The notes beneath the pieces were generated by a model. The model was not told the origin of the DNA, did no database searches, and saw only the letters and a program-made list of their open reading frames with translations. Below are positions 2,747 through 50,324 of a stretch of DNA of 64,000 nucleotides, piece by piece (positions within the stretch are counted from its first letter, which is position 1; each line of letters begins with the position of its first letter). A program made the translations under genes and the position numbers. The DNA comes from Tubulanus polymorphus (Eukaryota; Animalia; Nemertea), in contig NC_134035.1 of assembly GCF_964204645.1 (NCBI RefSeq), positions 10,510,451-10,574,450 on the forward strand, written 5' to 3'.

Positions 2747-3838
2747 ATGTTTACCCGTCTCAAGATAATTGGAATAGCCTGTTTCATCGTCACTTCGATG
2801 TTTTTGGTGTTTAGCGAGAATCTGAGGAACAGACTGCATGCAGCAGGGCTGGGGACAACGCAACACGTGATGCAAGTACCTGTTGTTTACAATGAAATTG
2901 TCGCCGATTTATTGGAACAGAATCTGCCCTTTACGGATAAAAACTGCGGTCACGTGCCTAAAAGAATACACCAGACGTGGAAAACTGAAAATATCCCGAC
3001 TTCGTTCAAAAAATATATCACGTCTTGGGTGAAACTTCACCCCGATTGGGAATATTGGTTGTGGACCGATAGCATCGCCGACGAGTTCGTTAAACGCAGA
3101 TTTCCTGCGTATTATCCGATGTACAAAAATTATGGACAGGGAATTCACAGAGCCGACGCGATTCGGTATTTCATACTCTATACGTTCGGTGGACTGTACG
3201 CTGATTTAGATATGGAAGCCTTGCGGCCATTCGATCATTTGCTGAACACCCACACGGCGATGATAACCGAAGATCATCCTGCCCATAGCGTCGTTTATTG
3301 GGGTCGACCGCGACCATCGACTTTAAACGCGTTAATGACGTCAACGCCAAAACATAAATATCTACGGAAAATAATCGAATATCTTCCCACAGCTGATAAA
3401 GCAACAAGTAAAGGTGATGTTGTTGATAAAACTGGTCCATTCATGACTGATGCGGTTTTAGTTGCGTATGAGAAATCCGTGGGCGGTGTGGGCAACAGAA
3501 CCGTGTCGTTATGCGATGCAGTCTATTTTGCGCCATACAGTCGATTTATCCCTGACTTCGACCTCTTCAATGCGAAGCCGATTGTAAACGGATGTAAAAA
3601 CCCCGGACCCCCTTCAACACCTCGAGGTAAAACTTGTGAAATGTTGAAACGCGACAATTTCAAGAATAAGCCACACGGACCGGAAGTGATGTCAAATCAC
3701 GCATTCCATCACACGTATTACGATAAACCCGAATACAAGTTAGTGTTTACTGTTCGCGAAATCGTGAAAAAACCGTTCGACATCAAAACATTTATAGCCA
3801 ATATGAAACCTGATAGAGACTTCGAGAAATTAGTTTGA
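2747..3838 (+). CDS. GT32 DXD glycosyltransferase copy 1 (OCH1/SUR1/A4GALT-like, type II membrane), 363 aa
   Basis: N-terminal TM helix, VPKRIHQTWK, RADAIRYFILYTFGGLYADLD (DXD), KTGP and C-terminal His motif; uninterrupted ORF; acceptor-like TATTAG at 2733-2734 just before the ATG. Confidence 0.92.
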   Translation: MFTRLKIIGIACFIVTSMFLVFSENLRNRLHAAGLGTTQHVMQVPVVYNEIVADLLEQNLPFTDKNCGHVPKRIHQTWKTENIPTSFKKYITSWVKLHPDWEYWLWTDSIADEFVKRRFPAYYPMYKNYGQGIHRADAIRYFILYTFGGLYADLDMEALRPFDHLLNTHTAMITEDHPAHSVVYWGRPRPSTLNALMTSTPKHKYLRKIIEYLPTADKATSKGDVVDKTGPFMTDAVLVAYEKSVGGVGNRTVSLCDAVYFAPYSRFIPDFDLFNAKPIVNGCKNPGPPSTPRGKTCEMLKRDNFKNKPHGPEVMSNHAFHHTYYDKPEYKLVFTVREIVKKPFDIKTFIANMKPDRDFEKLV

Positions 3839-3847
3839 GTATAAACT

Positions 3848-3993
3848 GAGAGAGTTTTGAATTTTCGCGCGAGAAAACCAAAATGTTTTGAATTCTCGCG
3901 CAAGAAAACCAAACTTTTTGAAAATCTTTTTATCGTTGCTCTAGCCGTACAGAAAGTACGGCCCGTTTAGTATGGCCCGAATCAGCCACCATA
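3848..3993 (-). mobile_element. Short TATGG-terminated element; inverted relatives at about 6458-6590 and 15245-15378
   Basis: Reverse complement reads TATGGTGGCTGATT.GG.CCATACTAAA...GGTTTTCTCGCGCGAGAATTCAAAAC; absent from the paralogous flank of copy 2. Confidence 0.6.
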
Positions 3994-5330
3994 GATTTGA
4001 CTACAAAAGCGCCTGTAATTCTGTTGGATTCGAACCGGCGCGGTACTGGTACCGATCCGACGCGTTCGTTGTTCTAAATTCAATGCCGTTGCTGAGGCAA
4101 TTTTCGGACGTGGTTCATTGTGAAAATATTAAACGACTCAATCTCGATGTAAACATCACACATTCAATAAATTCTAGAATCACCCACGGTCATTTTGACT
4201 ATTACTGTCGTTTTTCTCTTTGGACCGTGACGTATTCTTCCGGAACATCCCCCCCACGAAGCGCTAAACCGGACGAGCTCTGACGTCGACTTTTCAGCTA
4301 GTCAAATTCGGTTAAAAAGATATTGTGTAGTATCCACATATACGCGTTTATCAAAGGAACGTCCCCCAGCGCACGTCTTTTTACTTTTTTATGAATTTCG
4401 TGAACTCTCGTGAAAAATATGAACATTGTATGAACATGATATGAATTATTTACTCACTCACCAATTTACTCAATTAACCTGTTCTCCTCTGTATATATAC
4501 CCCTGTTTTTAGTCTATATCTCACACCTGACGATGATATTTAGGGTGAGATCGAAACGTCGTGTCTTCTATATATTTTAGATTGAATGAATAAATTATTG
4601 TTTTTAAATTCTTTTAATCTGTAGATGGTGGGTTTTTATCTTATTATATGAACATTGTATCTAAATTTTTTGACACTGACATTTTAGGGGGTTCGTTCGC
4701 TATCCCCAAACAACCCCCCCCCCCCCACTCAACACGGCCAGTCATGCGACATTCGTAAACATGATTTTTTAAAAGCTGCAAGCACTTCTATGACATTACG
4801 GTTCGTAAACCATATGTAGCAGTAGTAGGTTAATTCATCTTGGAAACGGACGTGGATCCTATATACTTTTCCATCGATTTCTAGCGTTTTTCAAATTTGT
4901 CGTAGCATATGGTAAATATCGACTTTCCATTGTCACCGTTTGAATATCATCATATATTTTATGTTGCCGTGGAGGCGTAACGTCGCGTTGGCCCTCATTC
5001 ACATCCAACCTTTTTCAAAGACCAGACTGATCTAAGAGGGTGATAGGATTATATTCGCTCATCCAAAAAGGTAAGATTTTCAAAGTAGTGAATGAAAGAT
5101 ATACGACACTAAATGTAACGGAATAATTATATATTTCTTCAAGTTTCACCTCATGATATTCTTCTCGATTTCCTTTTCTCAATCACGAAATAATCGACGG
5201 CGGAATTCCATCGGAATTCCAACTGTAGAAGAAACTGACAATATTATCATTAGCCTGCATGCCAAAATTGTTGTTACAAAGGAGAACGTAGTTCACATGA
5301 CAATATCAAAGAATGGAAATATGCTTTATT
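3992..5330 (+). repeat. Segmental duplication of GT32 3' flank (matches about 8268-9300)
   Basis: Colinear high identity downstream of copies 1 and 2. Confidence 0.85.
4523..4564 (+). ncRNA. Second copy of the Penelope-like hammerhead (stem II mutated), element to about 4645
   Basis: ACAC-CUGACGA-U-GAUAUUUAGGGUGAGAUC-GAAACGUC-GUGU followed by the same tail as 24915-24994. Confidence 0.65.
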
Positions 5331-5339: not shown

Positions 5340-6945
5340 TTTCATGGTTTTTCATAGCTAGTGGAATATGCCCACTCAATCACTAATTAAATAGTGTTGC
5401 CGTGGGAGACACGTGGAGCCGCTGCGTAAAGCCCTTGAGTCACATTCAACCTTTTTTCGTGACAGAACCGAAATAAGAGGAGCGGTCCATATATTCACGT
5501 AAACAGATCTATATAGTAAAAGTCAAATGTATTGAATGAAAGATATGCGACACTAAAAGAAATGGAATGATAAACACGTCTTCCTTGAAATTAATTAATG
5601 TTGTTAACAAAATTACGAAGATTTCTTTCGCAGAGTGTATCCAGTCGATGAAACACGTTAAGCTGTTTAACCGGACTCGAAAACAGCTACTGATAATATC
5701 AGCCACATGCAAAAATTTTTACAACGGAGAACGTAGTTCAGATGGCAATCTAAGAAAGGATATTATGCTTTATTTGCAACTTATTGTAATTATATTGTAT
5801 CGGTGGCAGCGCGATAGTTGGGCAGTACAGTCGAAATTTTTCTCTTCGCTATTTATTTAAACAAGACCGTTAGGAACAAAGCATATTGATAATACGGTGG
5901 AATTAACAGTCTCGACAGACTTATAACGATAGGGATAACAAATCAAGCAATATTAAATATATACAGTGTACAACAAAATGGAAAGTGTAAACGCATAAAC
6001 TTTGATAAAATGAAACCATGGAACTATTTCATTGTCACGCCATTTCATATTATAGATATTTAATCAGCTTATTTTCAGTAATTTAGTCGTAGCTAACAAA
6101 AAAACCAATTTAATGCATAAACGTTCACCATTCACATATATACATGTATACATACAGTCTAAGCCTGGCTGATCGGAATATCATGTATATGTTTTATTTG
6201 GCCCTCGACGCATATCTTCAATCAACCACCGTTCTGATCCGGGTCAAGTCCTCTTATAATCATCAAAATTTAAAAGGAATAAAGCCCTAGATATTTCATT
6301 CAAATCTCGATGTCCAGGTTACTGGATATGTTTACCCTCGGGGAATAGTCGACAATCATGTGCTGAGCCCGTAAAGCTTGCGCTCCCCGGCAGGGATTCG
6401 ATCCTCCGCATAAAATTAGTATTTTCGTTGAACCTGATTCCATCGAGGCTCGTCACCTATGGTGGCTGATTTGGCCCATACTAAAAAATGTTTCAAAAGA
6501 GCAACGATGAAAAAAAAAATTTTCACATTGGCCCGTTTTTTGGTTTTCTCGCGCGAGAATTCAAAACTTTTGGTTTTCAGTCACCGAGTACAGTCGCAAT
6601 TGTTTACTAGAACTTTAATGAACATACTTTTTACAGCCTCTCCTTTTATTTACAGCCTCTCCTTTTATTTACAGCCTCTCCTTTTATTTACAGCCTCTCC
6701 TTTTATTTACAGCCTCTCCTTTTTACAGCCTCTCCATTTTATAGCCTCTCCTTTTTACAGCCTGTCCTTTTATTTACAGCCTCTCCTTTTACTACCTCTC
6801 CTTTTTACAGCCTCTCCTTTTTACTGCCTCTCCTTTTTACAGCCTCTCCTTTTATTTACAGCCTCTCCTTTTACTACCTCTCCTTTTTTACTGCCTCTCA
6901 ACGAAACATTTGTGATAATAATCAGATTTTTTTGAATCCTTTAGC
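5340..6945 (+). repeat. Segmental duplication of GT32 5' flank (matches about 13505-18095)
   Basis: Colinear high identity; second copy has a MITE insertion and the expanded minisatellite. Confidence 0.85.
6628..6899 (+). repeat. Minisatellite, 17-21-bp unit TTT(ATTT)ACAGCCTCTCCT, about 15 units
   Basis: Directly visible tandem repeat ending about 45 bp before the copy 2 ATG. Confidence 0.95.
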
Positions 6946-8169
6946 ATGGTACGCATTAGACACATTTTGCTTGAACCAAATCGTCTCAAGATAATCGGAT
7001 TGGTCAGCTTAATCCTAACTTCGTTGTTTTTGGTGTTCAACGCGCTGAGCGGCCTGAAAGCGGCAGTGTGTGGTTCAACGCAATCCTACATGATCGCATA
7101 CGATGACGCCGTTGCCAATTTATTAGAACAGAACACGAGGAGCAGCCTGCAGGTGTTAGTGCATCGTGACGGTACCGTGAATGCTTCTACATCACAACAC
7201 AGTATAAAGGTTCCCGTTATGTACAATGATATCGTTGCCATTTTACTGGAACAGTTTCACTTTACGGATAGTAAATGCGGTCACGTGCCTAAAAGAATAC
7301 ACCAGACCTGGAAAACTGAAAATATCCCGATTTCGTTTAAAAAGTATATCACGTCTTGGGTGAAACTTCACCCCGATTGGGAATATTGGTTGTGGACCGA
7401 TAGCATGGCCGACGAGTTCGTTAAACGCAGATTTCCTGCGTATTACCCGATGTACAAAAATTATGAAGAGGGAATTCACAGAGCCGACGCGATTCGGTAT
7501 TTCATACTCTATACGTTCGGTGGACTGTACGCTGATTTAGATATGGAAGCCTTCCGACCATTCGATCATTTGCTGAACACCCACACGGCGATGATACCCG
7601 AAGATCATCCGGCCCATAGCGTCGTTAATTGGAATCTGTCGCGACCTTCGACTTTAAACGCGTTAATGGCGTCAACGCCAAAACATAAATATCTACGGAA
7701 AATAATCGAATTTCTTCCGAGAGTGGATAAAGCAACAAGTAAAAGTGATGTTGTTTGCAAAACTGGTCCATTCCTGACTGATGCGGTTTTAGTTGCCTAT
7801 GTGAAATCCGTGGGTTTTGAGGGCAACAGAACCGTGTCGTTATGCGATGCAGTCTATTTCGCGCCATACAGTCGATTCATTCCTGACTTTGACACGAATG
7901 CTTTACAGAGCATGAAAAACGGATGTAATAACCCCGGACCCCCTTCAACACCTCGAGGTAAAACTTGTGAAATGTTGAAACGCGACAATTTCAAGAATAA
8001 GCCACACGGACCGGAAGTGATGTCGAATCACGCATTTCACCACACGTATTACGATAAACCCGAATACAAGTTAGTGTTTTCCGTTCGCGAAATCGTGAAA
8101 AAACCGTTCGACATCAAAACATTGATAGCAAATATGAATCCCGATAGAGACTTCGAGAAATTAGTTTGA
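6946..8169 (+). CDS. GT32 glycosyltransferase copy 2, 407 aa (long stem)
   Basis: Same motifs as copy 1; ATG directly follows TTTAG|C. Confidence 0.92.
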   Translation: MVRIRHILLEPNRLKIIGLVSLILTSLFLVFNALSGLKAAVCGSTQSYMIAYDDAVANLLEQNTRSSLQVLVHRDGTVNASTSQHSIKVPVMYNDIVAILLEQFHFTDSKCGHVPKRIHQTWKTENIPISFKKYITSWVKLHPDWEYWLWTDSMADEFVKRRFPAYYPMYKNYEEGIHRADAIRYFILYTFGGLYADLDMEAFRPFDHLLNTHTAMIPEDHPAHSVVNWNLSRPSTLNALMASTPKHKYLRKIIEFLPRVDKATSKSDVVCKTGPFLTDAVLVAYVKSVGFEGNRTVSLCDAVYFAPYSRFIPDFDTNALQSMKNGCNNPGPPSTPRGKTCEMLKRDNFKNKPHGPEVMSNHAFHHTYYDKPEYKLVFSVREIVKKPFDIKTLIANMNPDRDFEKLV

Positions 8170-11943: not shown

Positions 11944-13089
11944 ATGGTGCATATCGGATGGATTTTGCTTAAGCCAACTCATCTCAAGATAATTGGATTA
12001 GCCGGCTTTATCCTCACTTCGTTGTTTTTGTTGTTAAGCGAGAATATTATGAGGAACAGCCTGAAAGCATCATTGCATCGTCACGGTATCGTGAATGCTT
12101 CAATATCACCACATAGCATGAAGGTTCCCGTTGTATACAATGATATCGTGGCCGACATATTGGAACAGTTGCAGGTTAATGTAAGTAAATGCGGTCCCGT
12201 GCCTAAAAGAATACACCAGACGTGGAAAACTGAAAATATCCCGACTTCGTTCAAGAGACATATCACGTCTTGGGTGAAACTTCACCCCGATTGGGAATAT
12301 TGGTTGTGGACCGATAGCATCGCCGACGAGTTCATTAAACGCAGATTTCCTGCGTATTACCCGATGTACAAAAATTATGGACAGGGAATTCACAGAGCCG
12401 ACGCGATTCGGTATTTTATACTCTATACGTTCGGTGGACTGTACGCTGATTTAGATATGGAAGCCTTCCGACCATTCGATCATTTGCTGAACACCCACAC
12501 GGCGATGATACCCGAAGATCATCCGGCCCATAGCGTCGTTTATTGGGGTCGACCACGACCATCGACTTTAAACGCGTTAATGACGTCAACGCCAAAACAT
12601 AAATATCTACGGAAAATAATCGAACATCTTCCCAGAGCGAATAAAGCAACAAGCAAAAGTGATGTTCTTCGTAAAACCGGTCCATTCATGACTGATGCGG
12701 TTTTAGTTGCGTATGAGAAATCTGTGGGCAGTGAGAGTAACAGAACCGTGTCGTTATGCGATGCAGTCTATTTTGCGTCCTACAGTCGATTTATCCCTGA
12801 CATTGACCTCTCCAATGCGAGGCCGATTGTAAACGGATGTAAAAACCCCGGACCCCCTTCAACACCTCGAGGTAAAACTTGTGAAATGTTGAAACGCGAC
12901 AATTTCAAGAATAAGCCACACGGACCGGAAGTGATGTCAAATCACGCATTCCATCACACGTATTACGATAAACCCGAATACAAGTTAGTGTTTTCCGTTC
13001 GCGAAATCGTGAAAAAACCGTTCGACATCAAAACATTTATAGCCAATATGAAGCCCGATAGAGACTTCGAGAAATTAGTTCGAGTATAA
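11944..13089 (+). CDS. GT32 glycosyltransferase copy 3, 381 aa
   Basis: Same motifs; the stop used by copies 1/2/4/7 reads CGA here, giving a 2-aa extension. Confidence 0.92.
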   Translation: MVHIGWILLKPTHLKIIGLAGFILTSLFLLLSENIMRNSLKASLHRHGIVNASISPHSMKVPVVYNDIVADILEQLQVNVSKCGPVPKRIHQTWKTENIPTSFKRHITSWVKLHPDWEYWLWTDSIADEFIKRRFPAYYPMYKNYGQGIHRADAIRYFILYTFGGLYADLDMEAFRPFDHLLNTHTAMIPEDHPAHSVVYWGRPRPSTLNALMTSTPKHKYLRKIIEHLPRANKATSKSDVLRKTGPFMTDAVLVAYEKSVGSESNRTVSLCDAVYFASYSRFIPDIDLSNARPIVNGCKNPGPPSTPRGKTCEMLKRDNFKNKPHGPEVMSNHAFHHTYYDKPEYKLVFSVREIVKKPFDIKTFIANMKPDRDFEKLVRV

Positions 13090-14106
13090 ACTGATTCTAA
13101 GTTGTACCGTTTCTAAACCCAGTGATCGAACCCCTTCTTATTAAAATGCAAGAAACATAAGTCAACTGGATATTCAACTTGTATTCATACCCTCATAGGC
13201 AGAGGTAAATATCTGCGGAACCGCGCCCGTATATACAAAGACTCAACCATAATCTTCCATACCTGATAAAAAAAGATTATTTAGCTGTGTTTCGCTTTGT
13301 AGATTTGCGGCAACTCTGTTTATTTATCAAACTTGATAACTTTAATTCATTCATGACTGATGATCAACTAAATTTTTGAGCTACTATGAACGACGCCGCC
13401 TGCACGAGACTGTAAACCGTATTTAGCGGTACGTTTTATACATACTGTAAGGAGAGTGATTAGAAAGTGACAGAGCTGAGGATTCAAGGGTCGAAATAGA
13501 TTCATTTTCATGGTTTTTAAAAGCTATTGAAAAATGCGCACTCAATCACTAATTAAATAGTGTTGCCGTGGAGACACGTGGAGCCGCTGCGTAAAGCCCT
13601 TGAGTCACATTAGTAAAATTTAAATGTATTGAATGAAAGATATGTGACACTAAAAGTAACAGAATGATAAATTCCTTGAAGTTAATATCAATGATGTAAT
13701 ATCAATTTCGGATTCGAAAACAGCTACTGATAATATCAGCCACATGCCAAAAGTTTTACAAAGGAGAACGTAGTTCAGATGGCAATCTAAGAAAGGATAT
13801 TATGCTTTATTTGCAACTTATTGTAATTATATTGTATTTATTTTAACAAGACCGTTAGGTACGAAACATATTGATAATATGGTGGAATTAACAGTCTCGA
13901 CAGACTTATAACGATAGGGATAACAAATCAAGCAATATTAAATATATACAGTGTACAACAAAATGGAAAGTGTAAACGCATAAACTTTGATAAAATGAAA
14001 CCATGGAACTATTTCATTGTCACGCGATTTCATATTATAGATATTTAATCAGCTTAGTTTCAGTAATTTAGTCGTAGCTAACAAAAAAAACTATTTAGTG
14101 CATAAA

Positions 14107-14890: not shown

Positions 14891-15414
14891 CATAAACGTT
14901 CACCATTCACATATATACATGTATACATACAGTCTAAGCCTGGCTGATCGGAATATCATGGCGACATGTATATGTTTATTTGGCCCTCGACGCATATCTT
15001 CATATTAACCACCGTTCTGATCCGGGTCAAGTCCTCTTATAATCATCAAAATTTAAAAGGAATAAAGCCCTAGATATTTCATTCAAATCTTGATGGCCAG
15101 GTTACTGGATATGTTTACCCTCGGGGAATAGTCGACAATCATGTGCTGAGCCCGTAAAGCTTGCGCCCCGGCCCCGGCAGGGATTCGATCCTCCGCACAA
15201 AATTAGTATTTTCGTTGAACCTGATTCCATCGAGGCTCGTCACCTATGGTGGCTGATTCGGCCCATACTAAAAAATGTTTCAAAAGAGCAACGATGAAAA
15301 AAAAAAATTTCACATTGGCCCGTTTTTTGGTTTTCTCGCGCGAGAATTCAAAACTTTTGGTTTTCAGTCACCGAGTACAGTCGCAATTGTTTACTAGAAC
15401 TTTAATGAACATAC

Positions 15415-18048
15415 TTTTTACAGCCTCTCCTTTTATTTACAGCCTCTCCTTTTATTTACAGCCTCTCCTTTTATTTACAGCCTCTCCTTTTATTTACAGC
15501 CTCTCCATTTTATAGCCTCTCCTTTTTACAGCCTGTCCTTTTATTTACAGCCTGTCCTTTTATTTACAGCCTCTCCTTTTACTACCTCTCCTTTTTACAG
15601 CCTCTCCTTTTTACTGCCTCTCCTTTTTACAGCCTCTCCTTTTATTTACAGCCTCTCCTTTTACTACCTCTCCTTTTTACAGCCTCTCCTTTTTACTGCC
15701 TCTTCTTTTATTTACAGCCTCTCCTTTTCACAGCCTCTCCATTTTACAGCCTCTCCTTTTACTACCTCTCCTTTTTACTGCCTCTTCTTTTTACAGCCTC
15801 TCCATTTTACTGCCTCTCCTTTTTACAGCCTCTCCTTTTATTTACAGCCTCTCCTTTTCACAGCCTCTCCATTTTACAGCCTCTCCTTTTACTACCTCTT
15901 CTTTTTACAGCCTCTCCTTTTATTTACAGCCTCTCCTGTTTACAGCCTCTTCTTTTTACAGCCTCTCCATTTTACTGCCTCTCCTTTTTACAGCCTCTCC
16001 TTTTATTTACAGCCTCTCCTTTTCACAGCCTCTCCATTTTACAGCCTCTCCTTTTACTACCTCTTCTTTTTACAGCCTCTCCTTTTATTTACAGCCTCTC
16101 CTTTTATTTACAGCCTCTTCTTTTATTTACAGCCTCTCCTTTTCACAGCCTCTCCATTTTACAGCCTCTCCTTTTACTACCTCTCCTTTTTACTGCCTCT
16201 TCTTTTTACAGCCTCTCCATTTTACTGCCTCTCCTTTTTACAGCCTCTCCTTTTATTTACAGCCTCTCCTTTTCACAGCCTCTCCATTTTACAGCCTCTC
16301 CTTTTACTACCTCTTCTTTTTACAGCCTCTCCTTTTATTTACAGCCTCTCCTGTTTACAGCCTCTTCTTTTTACAGCCTCTCCATTTTACTGCCTCTCCT
16401 TTTTACAGCCTCTCCTTTTATTTACAGCCTCTCCTTTTCACAGCCTCTCCATTTTACAGCCTCTCCTTTTACTACCTCTTCTTTTTACAGCCTCTCCTTT
16501 TATTTACAGCCTCTCCTGTTTACAGCCTCTCCTGTTTACAGCCTCTCCTTTTTACAGCCTCTTCTTTTTTTTACTGCCTCTCCTTTTATTTACAGCCTCT
16601 CCTTTTATTTACAGCCTCTCCATTTTACTGCCTCTCCTTTTTACAGCCTCTCCTTTTATTTACAGCCTCTCCTTTTCACAGCCTCTCCATTTTACAGCCT
16701 CTCCTTTTACTACCTCTTCTTTTTACAGCCTCTCCTTTTATTTACAGCCTCTCCTGTTTACTGCCTCTCCTTTTTACAGCCTCTCCTTTTATTTACAGCC
16801 TCTCCTTTTATTTACAGCCTCTCCTGTTTACAGCCTCTCCTGTTTACAGCCTCTCCTTTTTACAGCCTCTCCTTTTTACAGCCTCTCCTTTTTAACTGCC
16901 TCTTCTTTTTACAGCCTCTCCATTTTACAGCCTCTCCTTTTATTTACAGCCTCTCCTTTTTACAGCCTCTCCTTTTATTTACAGCCTCTCCTTTTCACAG
17001 CCTCTCCATTTTACAGCCTCTCCTTTTACTACCTCTTCTTTTTACAGCCTCTCCTTTTTACAGCCTCTTCTTTTTTATTGTCTCTCCTTTTATTAACAGC
17101 CTCTCCTTTTACTACCTCTCCTTTTTAAAGCCTCTCCTTTTTACTGCCTCTCCTTTTTACAGCCTCTCCTTTTTACAGCCTCTCCTTTTTACTGCCTCTT
17201 CTTTTTACAGCCTCTCCATTTTACAGCCTCTCCTTTTATTTACAGCCTCTCCATTTTACAGCCTCTCCTTTTACTACCTCTTCTTTTTACAGCCTCTCCT
17301 TTTTACAGCCTCTCCTTTTATTTACAGCCTCTCCTAATTACAGCCTCTCCTGTTTACAGCCTCTCCTTTTTACAGCCTCTCCATTTTACAGCCTCTCCTT
17401 TTACTACTTCTCCTTTTTACAGCCTCTCCTTTTTACAGCCTCTCCTTTTATTTACAGCCTCTCCTAATTACAGCCTCTCCTGTTTACAGCCTCTCCTTTT
17501 TACAGCCTCTTCTTTTTTATTGCCTCTCCTTTTATTTACAGCCTCTCCTTTTACTACCTCTCCTTTTTAAAGCCTCTCCTTTTTACTGCCTCTTCTTTTA
17601 TTTACTACCTCTCCTTTTCACAGCCTCTCCATTTTACAGCCTCTCCTTTTACTACCTCTTCTTTTTACAGCCTCTCCACTTTACAGCCTCTCCTTTTCAC
17701 AGCCTCTCCATTTTACAGCCTCTCCCTTTACTACCTCTTCTTTTTACAGCCTCTCCTTTTTACAGCCTCTCCTTTTTACTGCCTCTTCTTTTTACAGCCT
17801 CTCCTTTTATTTACAGCCTCTCCTAATTACAGCCTCTCCTGTTTACAGCCTCTCCTTTTTACAGCCTCTCCATTTTACAGCCTCTCCTTTTACTACTTCT
17901 CCTTTTTACAGCCTCTCCTTTTTACTGCCTCTCCTTTTTACAGCCTCTCCTTTTATTTACAGCCTCTCCTTTTACTACCTCTCCTTTTTACTGCCTCTCC
18001 TTTTTACAGCCTCTCCTTTTTACTGCCTCTCCTTTTTTACTGCCTCTC
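15415..18048 (+). repeat. Same minisatellite expanded to about 2.6 kb (roughly 140 units, with higher-order blocks)
   Basis: Directly visible; paralogous position upstream of copy 4. Confidence 0.97.
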
Positions 18049-18095: not shown

Positions 18096-19319
18096 ATGGT
18101 ACGCATTAGACACATTTTGCTTGAACCAAATCGTCTCAAGATAATCGGATTGGTCAGCTTAATCCTAACTTCGTGGTTTTTGGTGTTCAACGTGCTGAGC
18201 GGCCTGAAAGCGGCAGTGTGTGGTTCAACGCAATCCTACATGATCGCATACGATGACGCCGTTGCCAATTTATTGGAACAGAACACGAGGAGCAGCCTGC
18301 AGGTGTTAGTGCATCGTGACGGTACCGTGAATGCTTCTACATCACAACACAGTATAAAGGTTCCCGTTGTATACAATGATATCGTTGCCATTTTACTGGA
18401 ACAGTTTCACTTTACGGATAGTAAATGCGGTCACGTGCCGAAAAGAATACACCAGACGTGGAAAACTGAAAATATCCCGATTTCGTTTAAAAAGTATATC
18501 ACGTCTTGGGTGAAACTTCACCCCGATTGGGAATATTGGTTGTGGACCGATAGCATGGCCGACGAGTTCGTTAAACGCAGATTTCCTGCGTATTATCCGA
18601 TGTACAAAAATTATAAATATGGAATTCACAGAGCCGATGCGATTCGGTATTTCATACTCTATACGTTCGGTGGACTGTACGCTGATTTAGATATGGAAGC
18701 CTTCCGACCATTCGATCATTTGCTGAACACCCACACGGCGATGATACCCGAAGATCATCCCGCCCATAGCATCGTTTATTGGGGTCGACCGCGACCATCG
18801 ACTTTAAACGCGTTAATGACGTCAACGCCAAAACATAAATATCTACGGAAAATAATCGAATTTCTTCCTACAGCGAATAAATCAACAAGTAAAAGTCATG
18901 TTGTTGGTAAAACCGGTCCATTCATGACTGATGCGGTTTTAGTTGCGTATGTGAAATCCGTGGGTGTTGAGGGCAACAGAACCGTGTCGTTATGCGATGC
19001 AGTCTATTTTGCGCCATACAGTCGATTTATCCCTGACATCGACCTCTCCAATGCGAGGGCGATTGTAAACGGATGTGAAAACCCCGGACCCCCTTCAACA
19101 CCTCGAGGTAAAACTTGTGAAATGTTGAAACGCGACAATTTCAAGAATAAGCCACACGGACCGGTAGTGATGTCGAATCACGCATTCCATCACACGTTAT
19201 TCGATAAACCCGAATACAAGTTATTGTTTACTGTCCGCGAAATCGTGAAAAAACCGTTCGATATCAAAACATTAATAGCAAATATGAAGCCTGATAGAGA
19301 CTTCGAGAAATTAGTTTGA
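18096..19319 (+). CDS. GT32 glycosyltransferase copy 4, 407 aa
   Basis: Same motifs; N-terminus and 5' flank nearly identical to copy 2. Confidence 0.92.
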   Translation: MVRIRHILLEPNRLKIIGLVSLILTSWFLVFNVLSGLKAAVCGSTQSYMIAYDDAVANLLEQNTRSSLQVLVHRDGTVNASTSQHSIKVPVVYNDIVAILLEQFHFTDSKCGHVPKRIHQTWKTENIPISFKKYITSWVKLHPDWEYWLWTDSMADEFVKRRFPAYYPMYKNYKYGIHRADAIRYFILYTFGGLYADLDMEAFRPFDHLLNTHTAMIPEDHPAHSIVYWGRPRPSTLNALMTSTPKHKYLRKIIEFLPTANKSTSKSHVVGKTGPFMTDAVLVAYVKSVGVEGNRTVSLCDAVYFAPYSRFIPDIDLSNARAIVNGCENPGPPSTPRGKTCEMLKRDNFKNKPHGPVVMSNHAFHHTLFDKPEYKLLFTVREIVKKPFDIKTLIANMKPDRDFEKLV

Positions 19320-32265: not shown

Positions 32266-34760
32266 AAGGACAAATCGTATGATATTTCCGGGCTAACGTA
32301 GTGAACTGGTACAGAGTAGGGGCGGATCTAGGGGTACGCACCCTTTTTTCGGCCGAGTGACCTTTTGAATATCCTCCCAAAAAATCATAGGGTTGCAACC
32401 CGTCGCGCCATCCAGGTACATTGCGTACAATCAGTTCTCACAATGCACCCACATGCATCTAATTGTTCTGGTAGAAGACCCCCGGCGGACCCATCCCCTC
32501 GCTGATGACGACTTATTGTACAAAGGAGATACGTTACAGCGAGAAATAGAGGAAATATCACAATATGGTCCAATTCAACAAAATCTAATCAGGATCGGCT
32601 GATTTCCGATAGCCCGATATCTTAGCACTAACCAAGATCAAACTGCGAAGAGACGAGAGCAAATATACGGACCCATTCCAGTTTATTTAAAGCTTTGTGA
32701 TGTGAAGAGAGGAAATGAGGTTAAATGTCTTGCCCGGGACAACCGGGCTTCCCAGAGTCGGACGATCTATACACTCACCCACACCGCTCGCTCAACATAC
32801 ATATTTTTGATACATTATACGATGAATGAATTTCGGTTTATTGTCTTGCAGTGTGTAGCACGAAGAAGACTGACCCTGCTACGTATAGAACTATAATAGT
32901 GTTTTTGTCAATGTTTTGACGAATAAAATACAAATCATTTCATTAATAAATTAATAAATATGGAAAGAAAACTTTAGACCAGTCCTTTAGACACCATTAT
33001 TACAGCCAGCACCGTGCGCAAAAATCTAGATATGTTTCTAACATACATGTTATTTGTTTACATCCAATTAATTCGTGAATTTCTTGGTGGAAGGGTGCAC
33101 GAAATAACCATCTCGGGATATATCGAGATCTGGGTGTAGCACATGTTGGGCAGACTAGTAAAACATGCATTGCATGATATAATATTTCTTAAAAGTTTAA
33201 ATAGATTGATTGTCGCTAATAATGATCATGAAATATTGTGAAGTCTTGGAGTTGGTCCACGGTCGACTAGCTGATCTGGCAAATGTTAAAAACACATGTC
33301 ATCTGTTTGACCAACTCGATGTAAACCCCCGGTATACCGGCTACGGGTGATTAGGATCTTTGCGGTATAGAAAGTAAGGAGGTTTAACGGAGATTATTAA
33401 TGTTGGCTATCACCGTGATAAAACAGAGTTAGGCGGAGTGGCGATTTATCGGGAGGCGATATATTGTACTATTGATTAGTTGAACTATACCGCAATTCGT
33501 CGCAGGGCAAATCCCTGAGTAAAATCCCCAGGCTCAGAGAATAGTTAATCCAACCAGCGCACAGTGTAGTTAACATCAACTGAAACTAATTTCTCGAAGT
33601 CTCTATCGGGCTTCATATTTGCTATCAATGTTTTTATGTCAAACGGTTTTTTCACGATTTCTCGCACGGAAAACAATATCTTGTATTCGGGTTTATCGTA
33701 AACCGTGTGATGAAATGCGTGACTCGACATCACTTCCGGTCCGTGTGGCTTATTTGTGTAATTATCGCGTATCAACATTTCACAAATTTTACCTCCAGGT
33801 GTTCCAGGGGGTTCCTGATTTTCGCACTCGTATTTGAAGTATTTTACACCACTTAGGTCGATGTCAGGTATGAATCGACTGTACGATGCAAAATAGACTG
33901 AATCGCATAACGACACGGTTCTGTTGTCCTCGTCGCCCGCGGATTTCTCATACGTTACTAAAACCGCATCAGTCATAAATGGACCAGTTTTATAAAGAAC
34001 ATCCGTTCTATTTGTCGCCTCATTCGCTGTCGGTAGAAATTCGATAATTCTTCGTTGATATTTATGTTTTGGCGTTGACGTCATTAACGCGTTTAAAGTC
34101 GATGGTCGCGACAGATTCCAATTAACGATGCTATGAACGAGATGATCTTCGGGTATCATCGCCGAGTGGGTGTTCAGCAAATGATCGAATGGTCGGAAGG
34201 CTTCCATATCTAAATCAGCGTACAGTCCACCAAACGTGTATAGTATGAAATACCGAATCGCGTCGGCTCTCTGAATTCCCTCTTCATAATTTTTGTACAT
34301 CGGATAATACGCAGGAAATCTGCGTTTAACGAACTCGTCGGCGATGCTATCGGTCCACAACCAATATTCCCAATCGGGGTGAAGTTTAACCCAAGATGTG
34401 ATATATTTTTTAAACGAAATCGGGATATTTTCGGTTTTCCACGTTTGGTGTATTCTTTTAGGTACGCGACCGCATTTACTATCACTTAGGTCCAACTGTT
34501 CCAATACATTGGCAACGATATCATTGTATACAACAGGTACCTTCATGTTGTGTTGTGATATTGAACAGTAACGATGAAATGATGCTTTCAGGCCGCTCAG
34601 CGCGTTCTCGCTGAACACCAAAAACAAAATAGCGAGGATAAAGCTGGCCAATCCGAAAATCTTGAGATGAGCATGCTTAAGCCGTCCAAGCGCCATCCTA
34701 GGACAAAAAAAAATATGATTAATAACACAAATGTTTCATTGAAAGGGGGTCGAGAAGATA
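31840..34760. repeat. Tandem segmental duplication unit (matches about 36266-39790): orphan-gene tail, SINE and a GT32 gene
   Basis: Colinear similarity through both units. Confidence 0.85.
33545..34696 (-). CDS. GT32 glycosyltransferase copy 5, 383 aa
   Basis: Same motifs; ATG follows acceptor-like TTTTGTCCTAG|G. Confidence 0.92.
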   Translation of the reverse strand: MALGRLKHAHLKIFGLASFILAILFLVFSENALSGLKASFHRYCSISQHNMKVPVVYNDIVANVLEQLDLSDSKCGRVPKRIHQTWKTENIPISFKKYITSWVKLHPDWEYWLWTDSIADEFVKRRFPAYYPMYKNYEEGIQRADAIRYFILYTFGGLYADLDMEAFRPFDHLLNTHSAMIPEDHLVHSIVNWNLSRPSTLNALMTSTPKHKYQRRIIEFLPTANEATNRTDVLYKTGPFMTDAVLVTYEKSAGDEDNRTVSLCDSVYFASYSRFIPDIDLSGVKYFKYECENQEPPGTPGGKICEMLIRDNYTNKPHGPEVMSSHAFHHTVYDKPEYKILFSVREIVKKPFDIKTLIANMKPDRDFEKLVSVDVNYTVRWLD

Positions 34761-38540: not shown

Positions 38541-39692
38541 TTAATCATGCCAGTGCACACTGAAGTTAACATCAACTGAAACTAATTTCTCGAAGTCTCT
38601 ATCAGGTTTCATATTTGCTATTAATGTTTTGATGTCGAACGGTTTTTTCACGATTTCGCGAACGGAAAACAAAAGCTTGTATTCGGGTTTATCGTAATAC
38701 GTGTGATGGAATGTGTGATTCGACATCACTTCCGGTCCGTGTGGCTTATTCTTGAAATTGTCGCGTTTCAGCATTTCACAAATTTTACCTCCAGGTGTTC
38801 CAGGGGGTTCCTGGTTTTCACATTCGTATTTGAAGGTTTTTACACCATTTGGGTCGAAGTCGGGGATAAATCTACGGTATGACGCAAAATAGACTGCATC
38901 GCATAGCGACACGATCCTGTTGTCATCATCTCTCACGGATTTCTCATACGTAACTAAAACCGCATCAGTCATGAATGGACCAGTCTTATAAACAACATCC
39001 CTTTTATATGTCGCCTTATTCGCTGTCGGTAGAAATTCGATAATTCTTCGTTGATATTTATGTTTTGGCGTTGACGTCATTAACGCGTTTAAAGTCGATG
39101 GTCGCGACAGATTCCAATTAACGACGCTGTGAACGGGATGATCTTCGGGTATCATCGCCGTGTGGGTGTTCAGCAAATGATCGAATGGTCGCAAGGCTTC
39201 CATATCTAAATCAGCGTACAGTCCACCAAACGTGTATAGTATGAAATACCGAATCGCGTCGGCTCTCTGAATTCCATATTCATAATTTTTGTACATCGGA
39301 TAATACGCAGGAAATCTGCGTTTAACGAACTCGTCGGCGATGCTATCGGTCCACAACCAATATTCCCATTCGGGGTGAAGTTTCACCCAAGACGTGATAT
39401 GTCTTCTGAACGAAATCGGGATATTTTCAGTTTTCCACGTCTGGTGTATTCTTTTAGGCACTTGACCGCAGTTACTATCGCTAACGTCCAACTGTTCCAA
39501 TACATTGGCAACGATATCATTGTATACAACGGGAACCTTCATGTTGTGTTGTGATATTGAACAGTAACGACGAAATGATGCTTTCAGGCCGCTCAGCGCG
39601 TTCTCGCTTAACACCAAAAACAAAATAGCGAGGATAAAGCTGGCCAATCCGAAAATCTTGAGTTGAGCATGCTTAAGCTGTCCAAGCACCAT
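38541..39692 (-). CDS. GT32 glycosyltransferase copy 6, 383 aa (start reassigned from 39767 to 39692)
   Basis: Same motifs; MVLGQLKH start aligns with copy 5 MALGRLKH, follows TTTTATCCTAG|G, and gives the same CDS length as copy 5. Confidence 0.9.
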   Translation of the reverse strand: MVLGQLKHAQLKIFGLASFILAILFLVLSENALSGLKASFRRYCSISQHNMKVPVVYNDIVANVLEQLDVSDSNCGQVPKRIHQTWKTENIPISFRRHITSWVKLHPEWEYWLWTDSIADEFVKRRFPAYYPMYKNYEYGIQRADAIRYFILYTFGGLYADLDMEALRPFDHLLNTHTAMIPEDHPVHSVVNWNLSRPSTLNALMTSTPKHKYQRRIIEFLPTANKATYKRDVVYKTGPFMTDAVLVTYEKSVRDDDNRIVSLCDAVYFASYRRFIPDFDPNGVKTFKYECENQEPPGTPGGKICEMLKRDNFKNKPHGPEVMSNHTFHHTYYDKPEYKLLFSVREIVKKPFDIKTLIANMKPDRDFEKLVSVDVNFSVHWHD

Positions 39693-42199
39693 CCTAGGAT
39701 AAAAAAACCCGATTAGTAACACAAATGATTGACTGAAAGGCGTCGAGATCATGCAAAACAAGTTCATAAAAGTTCCGGTTTAGGCTACAGCTTTATCTAT
39801 TCCAGTTCATTGAAATTAGGGAAATCATGTTACGCACTCGGAGGAACGGGCGGCGGTGCGCGGCGCTGAGGGCGCGTCGTGCAGTGCCAGTTTTTATGGT
39901 CTAAATTTTTTGGTCAAAAACACGCGCACGCACGCACGCACATTCGTATGTATGCACTCTGCACATCGATAGGTCGGATGGGTGTTTGAACTCCACCGTC
40001 CGAATCGTCGAAACCTCGATTACTGAAATCATTGACGGGGCATTTTCGCCGCTACAGCGAAATTTCTCAATGCAAAACGCTTTAGGACGTTGGTGAATTC
40101 GTGGTTTAGAATATGCTTTTTCCGTTACCTGTTAGGACTAATATCTTATATCCATAAATGAATATTAAAAGACTGCTTCTTTGATTGACGAAATACATAC
40201 TTTTTAGTAAACAAATATGTTTCCGTTTCGTTCTTTTTTATTTTGTCATACATGTACATGTATTTCATACCCATCAAAACCTAGACGCTGGATTCATGTA
40301 GGCGCTTGTACGGCTTGTTGTGTAGGGTGTGTTCGCACGGATGAAATGATAGCGTTGTGTAACCATACGTATTGTTAATTCTAAAATGTCAAGGCCCATC
40401 ATGGCGCAAAAAGATGCAGTATGTCCAGTCCAGCCTGGAGAATCTTCCCATACCTTAGGGTAATTTAGTCTTCAAAGGACGAATTACCGCTGGCAGCAAA
40501 ACAACACAAATACAGTCAACCCCCGATATATCACTACGTCGTATCTATTTTCTCAGTCGGATCGTCCTTCCATCGCAATGGCAAATCTATCATACTTTGC
40601 ATCGAATTTAATTCAATATTCATTGTATTCGGCGAAGTTCAAACTCCGCAAAAGGGAAAACTTGTTTCTCATTTCATTTTTAGTGAAGAAATAAACTTGT
40701 ATAACAATCATAATACATAGAAAACAATTTCATACCCTAAGAAAATTAGGGAAAAATAATGGCAGAATTGATTATAAAATGATCAAACATCTAGCTTCAA
40801 ACATTTTCTTGATTGATAACCCTAGTTCTATCACCATTTGCGTTTCCATAAAAGCAGACATAGCTGATAGAATGAAAACAATAAATTGTTTTATTTCATT
40901 TCATGGTAAATGCACAAATTTAGAACACATCTTGTCGTCTCTAAAAAACTAATTCTTTAAATACAATTGTGCCTTTATTATTAGATAACAAATATAAATG
41001 GTATGCTTAGATATATATACAAAGTACATTATTATAATGAATACAATCTTATTTAAGTCAGGCATGAAAATATAGTAATTTCATAAAATCTAGGAAACAA
41101 AAGAGTGAAACAAATTTGAATTTTGATAACATGTACATGCGACTAAATGGCATGAAAATTCTAGCAATCATCTCTGCATTAGCACGGTCAACAATGTAAG
41201 CATAATATCATGCAATTCGTTGGTTGAGGGTGTTATTCAAAATGTACTACGGATGGGGGTCTAAAAACAGCCAAATTCACCGCACATACCATTTCAAGCC
41301 CTGAGAACAATATCTAATGAACTAGAGAATGCCTTGTCTCCATTCTACATTGTAGCTCAAAGAGTATCAGCATCGAATTCTGCAGCCACCAGAGCAATTC
41401 GGGAGTCCACTAGACTTGTTAGGCCTACATCTAGCTTCATCTCTACCCTGACTTCGACTGGTCACTGGTAATCAGTGGTGGTTGGTCATCGGCTTACTGG
41501 CGCTTGGGTCCGGTCAGCAGTCGGCCTCACACGTGTCAAGTAGAACCTACCATGCATCTCAGCCTGGGCATAGACGTTGTCCAGGAAGGGGATGGATGGA
41601 AATGAACGTATAGGTGACCGTTCTAGCCCTAACCTAAGAGGATTATCTTTTCATAAATCAATTAATCATCTCCCGCATCTACTCAATAGCGTCTCTGAAA
41701 GCATAGAATAAAAGCCAATTCTCTGTACATAGAAGTCAACCGATATATACGCTGAATAGATGTATAAATATGATCTCATTCAATAAATGATAAAGATTTC
41801 TACGGGAAGTGTTTATCTTACAGCACCTGGGCTTTTATCATTGACTCTATTCTATTTCAGTGCGCTAAACCATCAGATTACAGCTGAAATCGTTTCAGCG
41901 TATGCATCAACGGACCAAAAGAAAAATCTATGGCAAGGGTTGCAAGGCTGGGTTAGGTGGATTACAAAGGGAGTCAGGGTGCCCCTCTTGGATCGTGAAG
42001 GGCTCTTTAAACATCAGCCTAAAGAAATACCAATTACTTTTCCAACTCAAGCATTAATGTTTCTTTCCAAAGGCCTGGAGAATATCTAACCCTTTCTCGA
42101 AATGTCCCTCTATTCATGGATCATAGATCTGCTTTAGAAATTGGCTCACCCAGTATGGGGAGAGTGGCTGGTTCAAAGCGTTATAGGGATAATACTGGC

Positions 42200-47388: not shown

Positions 47389-48588
47389 TCAAACTAATTT
47401 CTCGAACTCTCTATCGGGCTTCATATTTGCTAACAATGTTTTGATGTCGAACGGTTTTTTCACGATTTCGCGAACAGTAAACAATAACTTGTATTCGGGT
47501 TTATCGTAATACGTGTGATGGAATGCGTGATTTGACATCACTTCCAGTCCCTGTGGCTTATTCTTGAAATTGTCGCGTTTCAACATTTCGCAAGTTTTAC
47601 CTCGAGGTGTTGAAGGGGGTCCGGGGTTTTTACATCCGTTTTTCATGCTCTGTAAAGCATTTGTGTCAAAGTCAGGAATGAATCGACTGTATGGCGCAAA
47701 ATAGACTGCATCGCATAACGACACGGTTCTGTTGCCCTCAACACCCACAGATTTCTCATACGCAACTAAAACCGCATCAGTCATGAATGGACCGGTTTTA
47801 CGAACAACATCACTTTTGCTTGTTGCTTTATTCGCTCTGGGAAGAAATTCGATTATTTTCCGTAGATATTTATGTTTTGGCGTTGACGTCATTAACGCGT
47901 TTAAAGTCGTCATTCGCGGTCGACCCCAATTAACGACGCTATGGGCCGGATGATCTTCGGGTATCATCGCCGTGTGGGTGTTCAGCAAATGATCGAATGG
48001 TCGGAAGGCCTCCATATCTAAATCAGCGTACAGTCCACCGAACGTATAGAGTATAAAATACCGAATCGCGTCGGCTCTGTGAATTCCCTGTCCATAATTT
48101 TTGTACATCGGATAATACGCAGGAAATCTGCGTTTAACGAACTCGTCGGCGATGCTATCGGTCCACAACCAATATTCCCAATCGGGGTGAAGTTTAACCC
48201 AAGATGTGATATATTTTTTAAACGAAATCGGGATATTTTCGGTTTTCCACGTTTGGTGTATTCTTTTAGGTACGCGACCGCATTTACTATCACTTAGGTC
48301 CAACTGTTCCAATGAATTGGCAACGATATCATTGTATACAACAGGTACCTTCATGTTTTGATGAACGGTACTGTAACGATGCGACGATGATTTCGGTCTG
48401 TTCCTCATATCCTGTTTCAATGAATTTGCAACGACATCAGTGAACCCACCAGGCGCATACTCCTTGTCGGGGTCAGTGAATCTATCAGGTACATTCACGT
48501 AATGTGATATTGAAACGTAACGACGCCACAGCAAAAACATCGCGAGGATGACACAGGCCATTCCAATTGTTTTGAGACGGGTACGCAT
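47389..48588 (-). CDS. GT32 glycosyltransferase copy 7, 399 aa
   Basis: Same motifs; 5' flank (TATTGGTATTAG|ATCACG.GAATCATG) homologous to copy 1. Confidence 0.92.
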   Translation of the reverse strand: MRTRLKTIGMACVILAMFLLWRRYVSISHYVNVPDRFTDPDKEYAPGGFTDVVANSLKQDMRNRPKSSSHRYSTVHQNMKVPVVYNDIVANSLEQLDLSDSKCGRVPKRIHQTWKTENIPISFKKYITSWVKLHPDWEYWLWTDSIADEFVKRRFPAYYPMYKNYGQGIHRADAIRYFILYTFGGLYADLDMEAFRPFDHLLNTHTAMIPEDHPAHSVVNWGRPRMTTLNALMTSTPKHKYLRKIIEFLPRANKATSKSDVVRKTGPFMTDAVLVAYEKSVGVEGNRTVSLCDAVYFAPYSRFIPDFDTNALQSMKNGCKNPGPPSTPRGKTCEMLKRDNFKNKPQGLEVMSNHAFHHTYYDKPEYKLLFTVREIVKKPFDIKTLLANMKPDREFEKLV

Positions 48589-49035
48589 GATTCACGTGAT
48601 CTAATACCAATATGATGTGCTATAAGATTTGAAATAAAAATCCGATAAATATCGTAATGATTTCAGCGAAAGATTATTTCACCGTATGCAAATGAGATAG
48701 ATGGATGAAATACTTGCCTTAACCAATATGGATACCGGAAATGATGACGATGATGATGACTGGTCTTAAGCTGTTAGATTAGCTATATAACTCAAATAGT
48801 CTTAGACTAGTCTCAAGTCTAAGCCTTGACTATGGAACCGGCCCCAGATGTTTTAAGTTTTGACATACTTGTCCTCTGCGATATTGTTCTGTTGTTATCG
48901 GCGTGCGCTCTTTTGATTGGTTAAATCATCAACTTGGAGCCTCCTATTATGATAATCAGCGATCTGACGTTTCGCTTTGATGTCCTTTTTTCACACTAGC
49001 TTGATAATTCAAAACCCGTTACAGCGAGAAAGGTC

Positions 49036-49525
49036 GCTGTTTCGACCAGACCTAGTAACAAGCTGCGAAAGGCGTTATTTAGACATTTAGTGCGTTCAGT
49101 TATCAGCTCGGTTCAAGTCCAGTACAGCATGGAATAGTTCCACGCTCAAAGATACATTTTTAGAAAAAACATCACAAATTCGCATGTAATATGGAAAAAA
49201 AATATCATCGCAATCTTCGGCTAGTTTTTTTCTTGCAGATTAAGATTTATCTTAACGTCATTTTGGGTGTATTCATTTTCTGAGAGAGATTTCTAGCAGA
49301 ATATTGAATCGAGCCTGTGAAGGAGGAGGTATTGTCCCGACTAACAGACACTTCAGTTCGTAAATAGTCGACTAACTGATAAGTTAAAAACTATAAAACG
49401 GATGTGGGCGCATCAGATATTGAATAGTTTGGAAATTTATCTTTAGAGCAAATAACCGACGCACTAAAAGTTCGGTCTAAATAACGCCTTTTGCATCTTG
49501 TAACTAGGTCTGGTCTAAACAGCAC
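49036..49525. mobile_element. Inverted-repeat element abutting the truncation point of the GT32 pseudogene
   Basis: GCTGTTT.GACCAGACCTAGT.ACAAG... inverted at both ends. Confidence 0.7.
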
Positions 49526-50324
49526 ATTGGGAATATTGGTTGTGGACCGATAGCATCGCCGACGAGTTCGTTAAACGCAGATTTCCTGCGTATTATCCGA
49601 TGTACAAAAATTATAAATATGGAATTCACAGAGCCGACGCGATTCGGTATTTTATACTCTATACGTTCGGTGGATTGTACGTTGATTTAGATATTGAAGC
49701 CTTCCGACCATTCGATCATTTGCTGAACACCCACACGGCGATGATACCTTAAGATCATCCCGTTCACAGCATCGTTTATTGGGGTCGACCGCGACCATCG
49801 ACTTTAAACGCGTCAATGACGTCTACGCCAAAACATAAATATCTACGGAAAATAATCGAATTTCTTCCCAGAGCGGATAAAGCAACAAGCAAAAGTGATG
49901 TTGTTAGTAAAACTGGTCCATTCATATTGATGAGGTTTCAGTTACATATATATGTGAAATCCGTGGGTTTTGAGGGCAACATAACCGTATCGTTTTGCGA
50001 TGCAGTCTATTTCGCGCCATACAGTCGATTCATTCCTGATTTTGACACTTTTGCTTTATTGAGCTTCAAAAACGGATGTAAAAAACCCCGGACCCCCTTC
50101 AACACCTCGAGGTAAAACTTGTGAAATGTTGAAACGCGACAATTTCAAGAATAAGCCACAGGGACCGGAAGTGATGTCAAATCACGCATTTCACCACACG
50201 TATTACGATAAACCCGAATACAAGTTATTGTTTTCCGTCCGCGAAATCGTGAAAAAAACCGTTCGACATCAAATCATTTATAGCCAATATGAAGTCCGAT
50301 GGAGACTTCGAGAAAATAGTATAA
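49526..50324 (+). pseudogene. 5'-truncated GT32 pseudogene (copy 8)
   Basis: Starts mid-gene at (D)WEYWLW; premature TAA at 49750-49752; frameshifting insertions near 49945, 50080 and 50255; no TM or stem. Confidence 0.9.

Follow-up and report, generated by a model that had tools for sequence, protein, structure and literature searches.

Animal GT32 enzymes are, to our knowledge, almost uncharacterised outside A4GALT and A4GNT. We analysed a stretch of 64,000 nucleotides from the nemertean Tubulanus polymorphus (contig NC_134035.1, positions 10,510,451 to 10,574,450; hereafter the window), which carries an array of GT32 genes. The best solved relative of their products by sequence is Och1, the initiation-specific alpha-1,6-mannosyltransferase of Saccharomyces cerevisiae (GT32; PDB 9n3s; E=1.6e-11, profile E=4.5e-23). 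Och1 and the array products have in common the PF04488 domain, the DXD motif, a retaining-type GT-A fold and a predicted type II topology, and their donor-side residues align one to one (equivalents of D171, R174, D187/D189, Q263 and H463). However, the two are only ~23% identical over 218 structurally aligned residues, and the worm proteins are without the large insertions of Och1 and carry their own ~30-residue Cys-bounded insertion after the acceptor loop. Moreover, Och1 is single-copy and conserved, whereas the worm genes form a mosaic array. With moderate confidence, we read this array as a lineage-specific tandem and inverted family of Och1-like GT32 genes that was shaped by duplication and inter-paralog conversion, with probable acceptor-side isoenzymes as its products and no dedicated diversification mechanism.

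Mosaic paralogs made by conversion are already a well-known mode of family evolution. In conversion-shaped families such as the primate opsins, RH, MHC and KIR, sites that have diverged in function survive within homogenised stretches. The array resembles families of this type, and the trypanosomatid UGT families as well, in its tandem copies, its signal in the pairwise homoplasy index (PHI) together with topology conflict, its short identical tracts and its islands of divergence. In the trypanosomatid UGT paralogs, recombination was reported without detectable positive selection (PMC5853035), which was likewise not found in the array. We regard the locus as a clean textbook case of mosaic paralogs, with no new principle.

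The ABO/GT6 enzymes, which also have the GT-A fold, evolve by birth and death with conversion, and a few residues near their active site can alter specificity; in the A/B enzymes, four residues switch the specificity for the donor, not for the acceptor. An earlier reading of the letters alone (the original prediction) had drawn an analogy to ABO. The analogy stands insofar as a few residues can change specificity, but it breaks down on the side at which they act: the A/B residues alter donor choice, whereas the donor-side motifs of the array are all invariant. ABO also belongs to a different CAZy family, and its diversity is allelic with documented balancing selection, whereas that of the array lies between paralogs. 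The glycosyltransferase domains of large clostridial toxins (GT44; PF12919) share the GT-A subtype and the motifs around DXD, and toxin-type structural matches reach Z 13-15 over model residues ~88-372. However, PF12919 scored 19.9-22.8 bits, under its cut-off of 23.6, and the array products are animal membrane-anchored enzymes without toxin delivery domains. A large clostridial toxin glucosyltransferase was ruled out on this sub-threshold score, the lack of toxin domains and the presence of an N-terminal membrane anchor only.

An open reading frame (ORF) scan of the window recovered seven intact intronless GT32 genes, c1 to c7, with products of 363-408 aa, and one pseudogene; c1-c4 lie on the plus strand and c5-c7 on the minus strand. 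The eight paralogs announced in the original prediction were thus borne out by ORFs, PF04488 matches and tblastn, and its assignment to GT32, the GT-A fold and DXD was upheld by PF04488 and the Och1 match. Its listed states of three hypervariable cassettes (HV1, HV2 and HV4) were every one exact in the alignment. The genes are:

c1, 2747..3838, plus strand: intact intronless GT32 gene, 363 aa; HV1 GQ, HV2 YWGRP, HV4 FDLFNAKPIV; PF04488 E=1.3e-19.
c2, 6946..8169, plus strand: intact GT32 gene, 407 aa; predicted type-II anchor; DXD as D197-L-D199.
c2 cassettes, plus strand: HV1 at 7465-7470, EE; HV2 at 7627-7641, NWNLS; HV3 at 7711-7758; HV4 at 7888-7923, FDTNALQSMK.
c3, 11944..13089, plus strand: intact GT32 gene, 381 aa; GQ, YWGRP, IDLSNARPIV; twin of c1.
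c4, 18096..19319, plus strand: intact GT32 gene, 407 aa; KY, YWGRP, IDLSNARAIV; twin of c2 in the 5' flank, the N-terminus and the first third of the core.
c5, 33545..34696, minus strand: intact GT32 gene, 383 aa; EE, NWNLS, IDLSGVKYFKYE; tract 34285-34504 identical to c7.
c6, 38541..39767, minus strand: intact GT32 gene, ORF of 408 aa; EY, NWNLS, FDPNGVKTFKYE; flank-level twin of c5.
c7, 47389..48588, minus strand: intact GT32 gene, 399 aa; GQ, NWGRP, FDTNALQSMK; HV4 block as in c2, 5' core as in c5.
Pseudogene, ~49526..50330, plus strand: head-to-head with c7; without the first ~144 codons; two frame changes and two in-frame TAA stops.

The Met conserved among the paralogs sits 25 codons into the c6 ORF. 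The tblastn pieces of the pseudogene are spread over three reading frames, and its nucleotide states make it a mosaic as well, with HV1 as in c4, HV2 YWGRP and an HV4 resembling c2/c7. The subfamily has two further intact members outside the window, further along the chromosome: L005 (G000:C11:10855539-10856696), ~345 kb past the window start, and L003 (G000:C11:10868723-10869904), ~358 kb past it. The array genes are already known, as uncharacterised predictions. Their nearest database proteins are uncharacterised proteins of T. polymorphus; four of the seven products are in NCBI and UniRef letter for letter, and for the other three there is no exact match. The clusters of these proteins also include two more members, of 359 and 333 aa.

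The three products scanned (c1, c2 and c5) scored 69-71 bits for PF04488, whose cut-off is 23, and the database homologues carry this domain too. Each of the seven intact copies has the DXD motif in the form D-L-D, and their RADAIRY helix does not vary. For c2, an AlphaFold2 model from an alignment of 38 sequences reached a predicted local distance difference test score of 87.7 and a predicted template modelling score of 0.82, with a long N-terminal helix at residues 11-43 and a compact domain from ~88. Foldseek placed Och1 (9n3s) on top for this model (E=5e-10), and so did VIA-align (Z 18.1, root-mean-square deviation 3.1 A over 218 residues, model 109-363 on Och1 91-464); the next structural matches were GT-A glycosylating toxin domains (Z 13-17). 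Together, domain matches and model indicate that the copies are type-II-anchored DXD glycosyltransferases of GT32 with a GT-A fold. A Golgi-type topology would be expected, and family membership by itself suggests retaining alpha-glycosyl transfer. The A4GALT/A4GNT branch of GT32 was ruled out, as the C-terminal PF04572 that follows PF04488 is missing: at E<=0.01 the Pfam scan gave PF04488, PF05704 (under its cut-off) and PF12919 alone, and no Gb3_synth (PF04572).

The copies differ in the length of the stem that joins the membrane anchor to the catalytic domain, in line with proteins of 363-408 aa. The stems of c2 (6946-7210), c4 (18096-18360) and c7 (48345-48588) hold a second, diverged module of the D-x-VAN-LLEQ type, an internal duplication of the module that precedes the catalytic domain.

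Mosaicism was tested among the array copies and L003 and L005. PHI was 0.263 against a permuted mean of 0.426 (standard deviation 0.012), and none of 5000 permutations was as low (p<0.0002). GENECONV-style permutation of polymorphic sites identified runs of identical sites at p<0.0002 for c5-c7 (core 37-259), c1-L005 (427-528, window 3302-3403, with 28 consecutive polymorphic sites identical), c3-L003 (550-643) and c1-c3 (702-868, with 49 identical polymorphic sites). The tracts that L003 and L005 share with c3 and c1 indicate that the conversion network extends outside the window. Between c5 (34285-34504) and c7 (48093-48312) there are no mismatches in 220 nt; beyond this tract, ~38 mismatches follow in the next 280 nt, where c5 is c6-like. 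The c2 gene changes its affinity repeatedly along its length, being c4-like over core 1-360 (9 of 357 nt differ), c6-like over 361-480, pseudogene-like over 481-560 and c7-like over 601-760. In the last of these segments (window 7807-7966), which spans HV4, 5 of 160 nt separate it from c7 and 27 of 160 from c4.

Trees of separate segments, made by IQ-TREE with ultrafast bootstrap, disagreed, and approximately unbiased (AU) tests rejected the groupings of other segments: c2+c7 in segment 1-260 (p=3.5e-5), c5+c7 in segment 400-640 (p=0.001), and both c2+c4 (p=8e-56) and c5+c7 (p=3e-4) in segment 641-740. No single topology fits. The PHI, run and AU results thus agree with the original prediction that conversion or recombination between paralogs made the mosaics, including between opposite strands ~40 kb apart; c2 does share HV2 with c5/c6 and HV4 with the opposite-strand c7. 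For the short cassettes alone, pairwise tract tests were not significant after Bonferroni correction (uncorrected p=0.02 for c2-c7 at HV4 and p=0.2 for c2-c5 at HV2). GC content at third codon positions peaks at 0.54 in the homogenised core, but distant paralogs have ~0.50 there, so biased gene conversion was not demonstrated.

The exchanges have left an uneven record along the genes. The copies had been described as almost invariant even at synonymous sites, which does not hold gene-wide: 216 sites of the 960-nt core vary, pairwise nucleotide identity is 86-94%, and the Nei-Gojobori method over the core gave synonymous divergence (dS) of 0.12-0.37 and a ratio of nonsynonymous to synonymous divergence (dN/dS) of 0.23-0.47. 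The description is apt for core codons ~55-133 only. Core nt 151-400 are 95-99% identical among all nine close copies, L003 and L005 included; over nt 1-150, identity is only 81-89% except within the twin pairs. Of the degenerate codons whose amino acid never varies, a fraction of 0.50 is synonymously polymorphic in codons 1-54, as against 0.10-0.16 in codons 55-133 and 0.54 in codons 223-252, where HV4 lies (between-segment difference, chi-square p=0.0027). The longest codon run without synonymous change, 17 codons, was not significant (p=0.14).

HV4 is divergent at synonymous sites too, and the linked synonymous differences extend into the flanking conserved codons. By this pattern the HV4 haplotypes look old, and retained or moved as blocks rather than the product of fast recent change. 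As had been noted, the N-terminus and the 5' flank mark c2 and c4 as twins (93% identity over 1557 nt, upstream region included), yet the two differ at every cassette. The claim that cassette states assort independently failed: HV1 and HV2 are fully associated, in that NWNLS accompanies every Glu-first HV1 and xWGRP every GQ or KY, and only HV4 and the N-terminal segment break the pattern. Nor is a hybrid origin of NWGRP in c7 called for. This state is one nucleotide from YWGRP, as EY in c6 is a single-nucleotide neighbour of KY, so neither needs recombination.

The NWNLS state of HV2 (c2 7627-7641, c5 34109-34123, c6 39105-39119) makes an N-glycosylation sequon, N-L-S, and YWGRP and NWGRP are without one. 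Sequons also occur within the HV4 equivalents of the distant paralogs L010 and L011. The states of a loop may therefore differ not only in side chains but also in glycan occupancy.

The flanks record the duplications on which the exchanges were laid. Window segment 5672-6121 matches 13709-14106 at 85%, 6113-6899 matches 14888-15688 at 96%, and c1/c3 and c2/c4 are each other's closest copies, indicating duplication of a two-gene unit, [c1-c2] to [c3-c4]. The non-coding divergence of these pairs is similar to their dS of 0.13-0.15. The flanks of c5 and c6 match at 85% (33063-34801 and 38071-39807). For most other pairs similarity ends at the borders of the coding sequence, which indicates that the 98-100% tracts are later conversion over older duplicates. 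Two blocks of one minisatellite lie in front of the twins c2 and c4:

16-bp minisatellite, 6627..6899, no strand assigned: pyrimidine-rich, ~16 units; ends ~47 bp before the c2 start codon, in the duplicated 5' flank shared with c4.
16-bp minisatellite of the same unit, 15414..18048, no strand assigned: ~159 units, 2.6 kb; ends ~47 bp before the c4 start codon; GC skew -0.72.

At 16-18 kb, this repeat accounts for the extreme skew in both GC and AT, and it also explains a spurious repetitive ORF of 158 aa at 6459-6935.

We then placed the cassettes relative to the active site by way of Och1, whose donor-side residues are T103, D139, D171, R174, D187-x-D189, Q263 and H463 and whose docked-acceptor residues are E243, Q260, S443, V446, Q448 and M464 (PMC12312940). 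Native Och1 numbering equals the PDB chain numbering plus 49, as checked on the DXD motif. D181/R184 of c2 align with Och1 D171/R174, and D197/D199 with D187/D189; H362-A363 align with H463-M464, at the end point of the VIA alignment (model 363 on Och1 464). N238 and S235 correspond to Q263 and Q260 by gap-free extension of a weak second profile-alignment block and are not directly aligned. The counterparts of all these c2 residues are invariant in the seven intact copies. With no variation in the donor and metal machinery, one nucleotide sugar probably serves all copies.

The cassettes lie beside these fixed points. HV1 is 6-7 residues before D181; HV2 (c2 residues 228-232) is 3-7 residues before S235 and 6-10 before N238; HV3 extends as far as the residue that precedes a near-invariant T-G-P motif. 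The invariant I312/P313/D314 align with Och1 S443/P444/D445, and the opening of HV4, F315/D316/T317 in c2, aligns with V446/G447/Q448. These placements suggest that HV2 and HV4 are on the acceptor side, and that the copies have diverged into isoenzymes which would differ in acceptor preference.

In the history that we favour, the array would have formed by duplication of the unit [c1-c2] to [c3-c4], plus an inverted block of c5-c7 and the pseudogene. Germline non-allelic gene conversion between paralogs, in tracts of ~50-250 bp, would later have reshaped it, keeping core codons ~55-133 near-identical in the nine close copies and also shifting loop-bearing blocks between copies, so that each gene became a different mosaic. 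As the variable loops flank the catalytic motifs and, by homology to Och1, include acceptor-contacting segments, a panel of isoenzymes differing in acceptor preference would be the most likely outcome. All of this looks like ordinary gene-family evolution, with no dedicated shuffling mechanism evident.

Selection was assessed in six variable segments, defined as 95 of the 320 codons. The proportions of synonymous (pS) and nonsynonymous (pN) differences were 0.272 and 0.174 in these segments (pN/pS 0.64; 0.53-0.73 per segment), and 0.156 and 0.029 in the rest of the core (pN/pS 0.18). No variable segment had a pN/pS convincingly above 1. The scaffold is under purifying selection, and seven of the eight copies are intact, which we counted as further evidence of selection; the variable segments are under relaxed or mixed constraints, and positive selection is not demonstrated.

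Four points weigh against the reading of the copies as acceptor-preference isoenzymes. The positions that vary in the array are the least conserved ones across the wider family (Spearman 0.44, p=3e-16), and the segments could be merely tolerant loops. The HV4 haplotypes are 66-79% identical between classes, next to 80 nt in which c1-c4, c7 and the pseudogene share 98-100% identity; their survival there fits selection against homogenisation, and it fits equally the rejection of heteroduplexes between very divergent DNA, which could alone explain the escape of the HV4 block. The match of HV4 to the Och1 acceptor loop is locally weak (-2.1 bits) and is backed only by collinear flanking anchors and the invariant Pro. 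The Och1 acceptor contacts themselves come from in silico docking (PMC12312940).

The explanation that competes best is that the loops are neutral, tolerant surface segments, that the copies are kept for dosage or for separate expression domains, and that the mosaic, a side effect of conversion, leaves specificity untouched. Variability that tracks the family and a pN/pS below 1 in the variable segments speak for it, and because the similarity of most copies ends at the coding borders, their promoters differ. It sits poorly, however, with variable segments that abut every catalytic motif and align with the acceptor-contact segments of Och1, and with deep HV4 haplotypes that persist inside homogenised flanks. 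In GT-A enzymes, loops beside catalytic motifs commonly set substrate choice. We consider this explanation possible, though unlikely.

We see a smaller chance that selection maintains a combinatorial reshuffling of cassettes, as the original prediction had proposed: a glycan-diversification system like the immune or antigenic-variation families, serving self-signature, mucus glycans or pathogen evasion. Each of the nine close copies does have a unique combination of loop states, the loops adjoin catalytic and acceptor motifs, and the HV4 classes stand apart from their flanks as selection opposing homogenisation would leave them. HV1 shows five nonsynonymous and no synonymous changes. This excess is confined to two varying codons, however, and is not significant alone (chance ~0.24). 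A segment pN/pS of 0.53-0.73 is not above 1, HV1 and HV2 are fully linked, and neutral conversion also yields mosaic combinations. Furthermore, there is neither a bank of donor cassettes nor associated recombination machinery, and among the remaining members of the family of at least 35 genes, protein identity is 40-65%, apart from a few recent pairs at 82-90%. With variability that follows the family and no bank of silent donors, we saw nothing that marks the array as immune-like or as a combinatorial system under selection, and we rate this proposal as rather improbable. Programmed cassette diversification of the VSG, VLR or chicken-immunoglobulin type was set aside: the window holds only one truncated pseudogene and the other copies are full-length, which leaves no donor bank.

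A narrower idea is that the acceptor-side loops, chiefly HV4, are held distinct by selection against homogenisation and redistributed by conversion, so that individuals or populations would carry different GT32 repertoires. We offer it as a speculation and give it little credence. If true, it would make the array a germline combinatorial locus of glycan diversity in an animal, relevant to interactions of mucus and surface glycans with microbes.

Assembly chimeras among near-identical paralogs are a very improbable source of the mosaics. The read check covered 5998 letters and drew on Logan unitigs of four runs from one study, whose library types are not on record; the unitigs are short, bridge no junction and break where the paralogs share words, which leaves this explanation some room. 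However, the copies differ by 6-14% in the core, have unique flanks and lie in a contig of 13.98 Mb, and the tract borders fall within single genes at a 100-bp scale, far under long-read length. Independent short-read unitigs of run X1 match the sampled stretches of c5 and c6 with zero differences. One of them, at 34367-34519, lies almost wholly in the tract identical between c5 and c7 and has a depth of 67 against ~35 for single-copy sequence, the roughly twofold depth expected if the sequence is truly present twice.

The chance that recurrent or convergent point mutation at hotspots, with no exchange, gave the shared states is negligible: EY and NWGRP are each one step from another state and the cassette states, as multistate characters, are pairwise compatible, but synonymous sites in the conserved codons alongside are linked to the shared blocks, the blocks extend over 25-220 nt of identity (c5-c7 without mismatch, c2 far closer to c7 than to c4), and PHI detects that compatible sites cluster along the genes.

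The preferred reading, a duplicated and conversion-shaped family of acceptor-side isoenzymes, has its setting in a larger gene family. The genome searched is an assembly of 268 Mb in 77 contigs and holds at least 35 GT32 genes, which are intronless. Most members of the wider family are 40-65% identical to their nearest relative, as given above. Outside the species, the closest proteins are from gastropods (~33% identity), followed by bacterial GT32 enzymes. Our literature searches found no earlier description of a GT32 family in a nemertean and no genome paper for T. polymorphus. Nemerteans are known for copious mucus, and a set of at least 35 such genes suggests a large unexplored glycan-building capacity in these animals. 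The pair c2/c4 could serve as natural chimeras, being near-identical in the first third and different in each loop, to map the loops that set acceptor choice in an Och1-like fold.

Several other features were observed around the array. Two adjacent ORFs of 204 and 600 aa (29617-30231 and 30463-32265, plus strand) occupy the spacer between the gene blocks and have no Pfam match; a stretch of the 600-aa ORF recurs at 77% identity between c5 and c6 (36260-37449). A high-copy repeat at ~37170-38170, probably a transposable element, reaches a summed unitig depth of ~12,900 in run X1, where single-copy sequence has ~35, and shows many loose ends. An intronless rhodopsin-type G-protein-coupled receptor gene (Srw-like, PF10324 E=1.9e-13; 50652-51734, minus strand) adjoins the pseudogene. 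Contigs of run X2, from a sample other than X1, fall mainly on genic parts and a repeat, at most a slight hint of expression. One X2 contig, at 38093-38593 just downstream of the c6 stop codon, carries six substitutions and an 8-bp insertion, which are allelic variation between individuals near the array.

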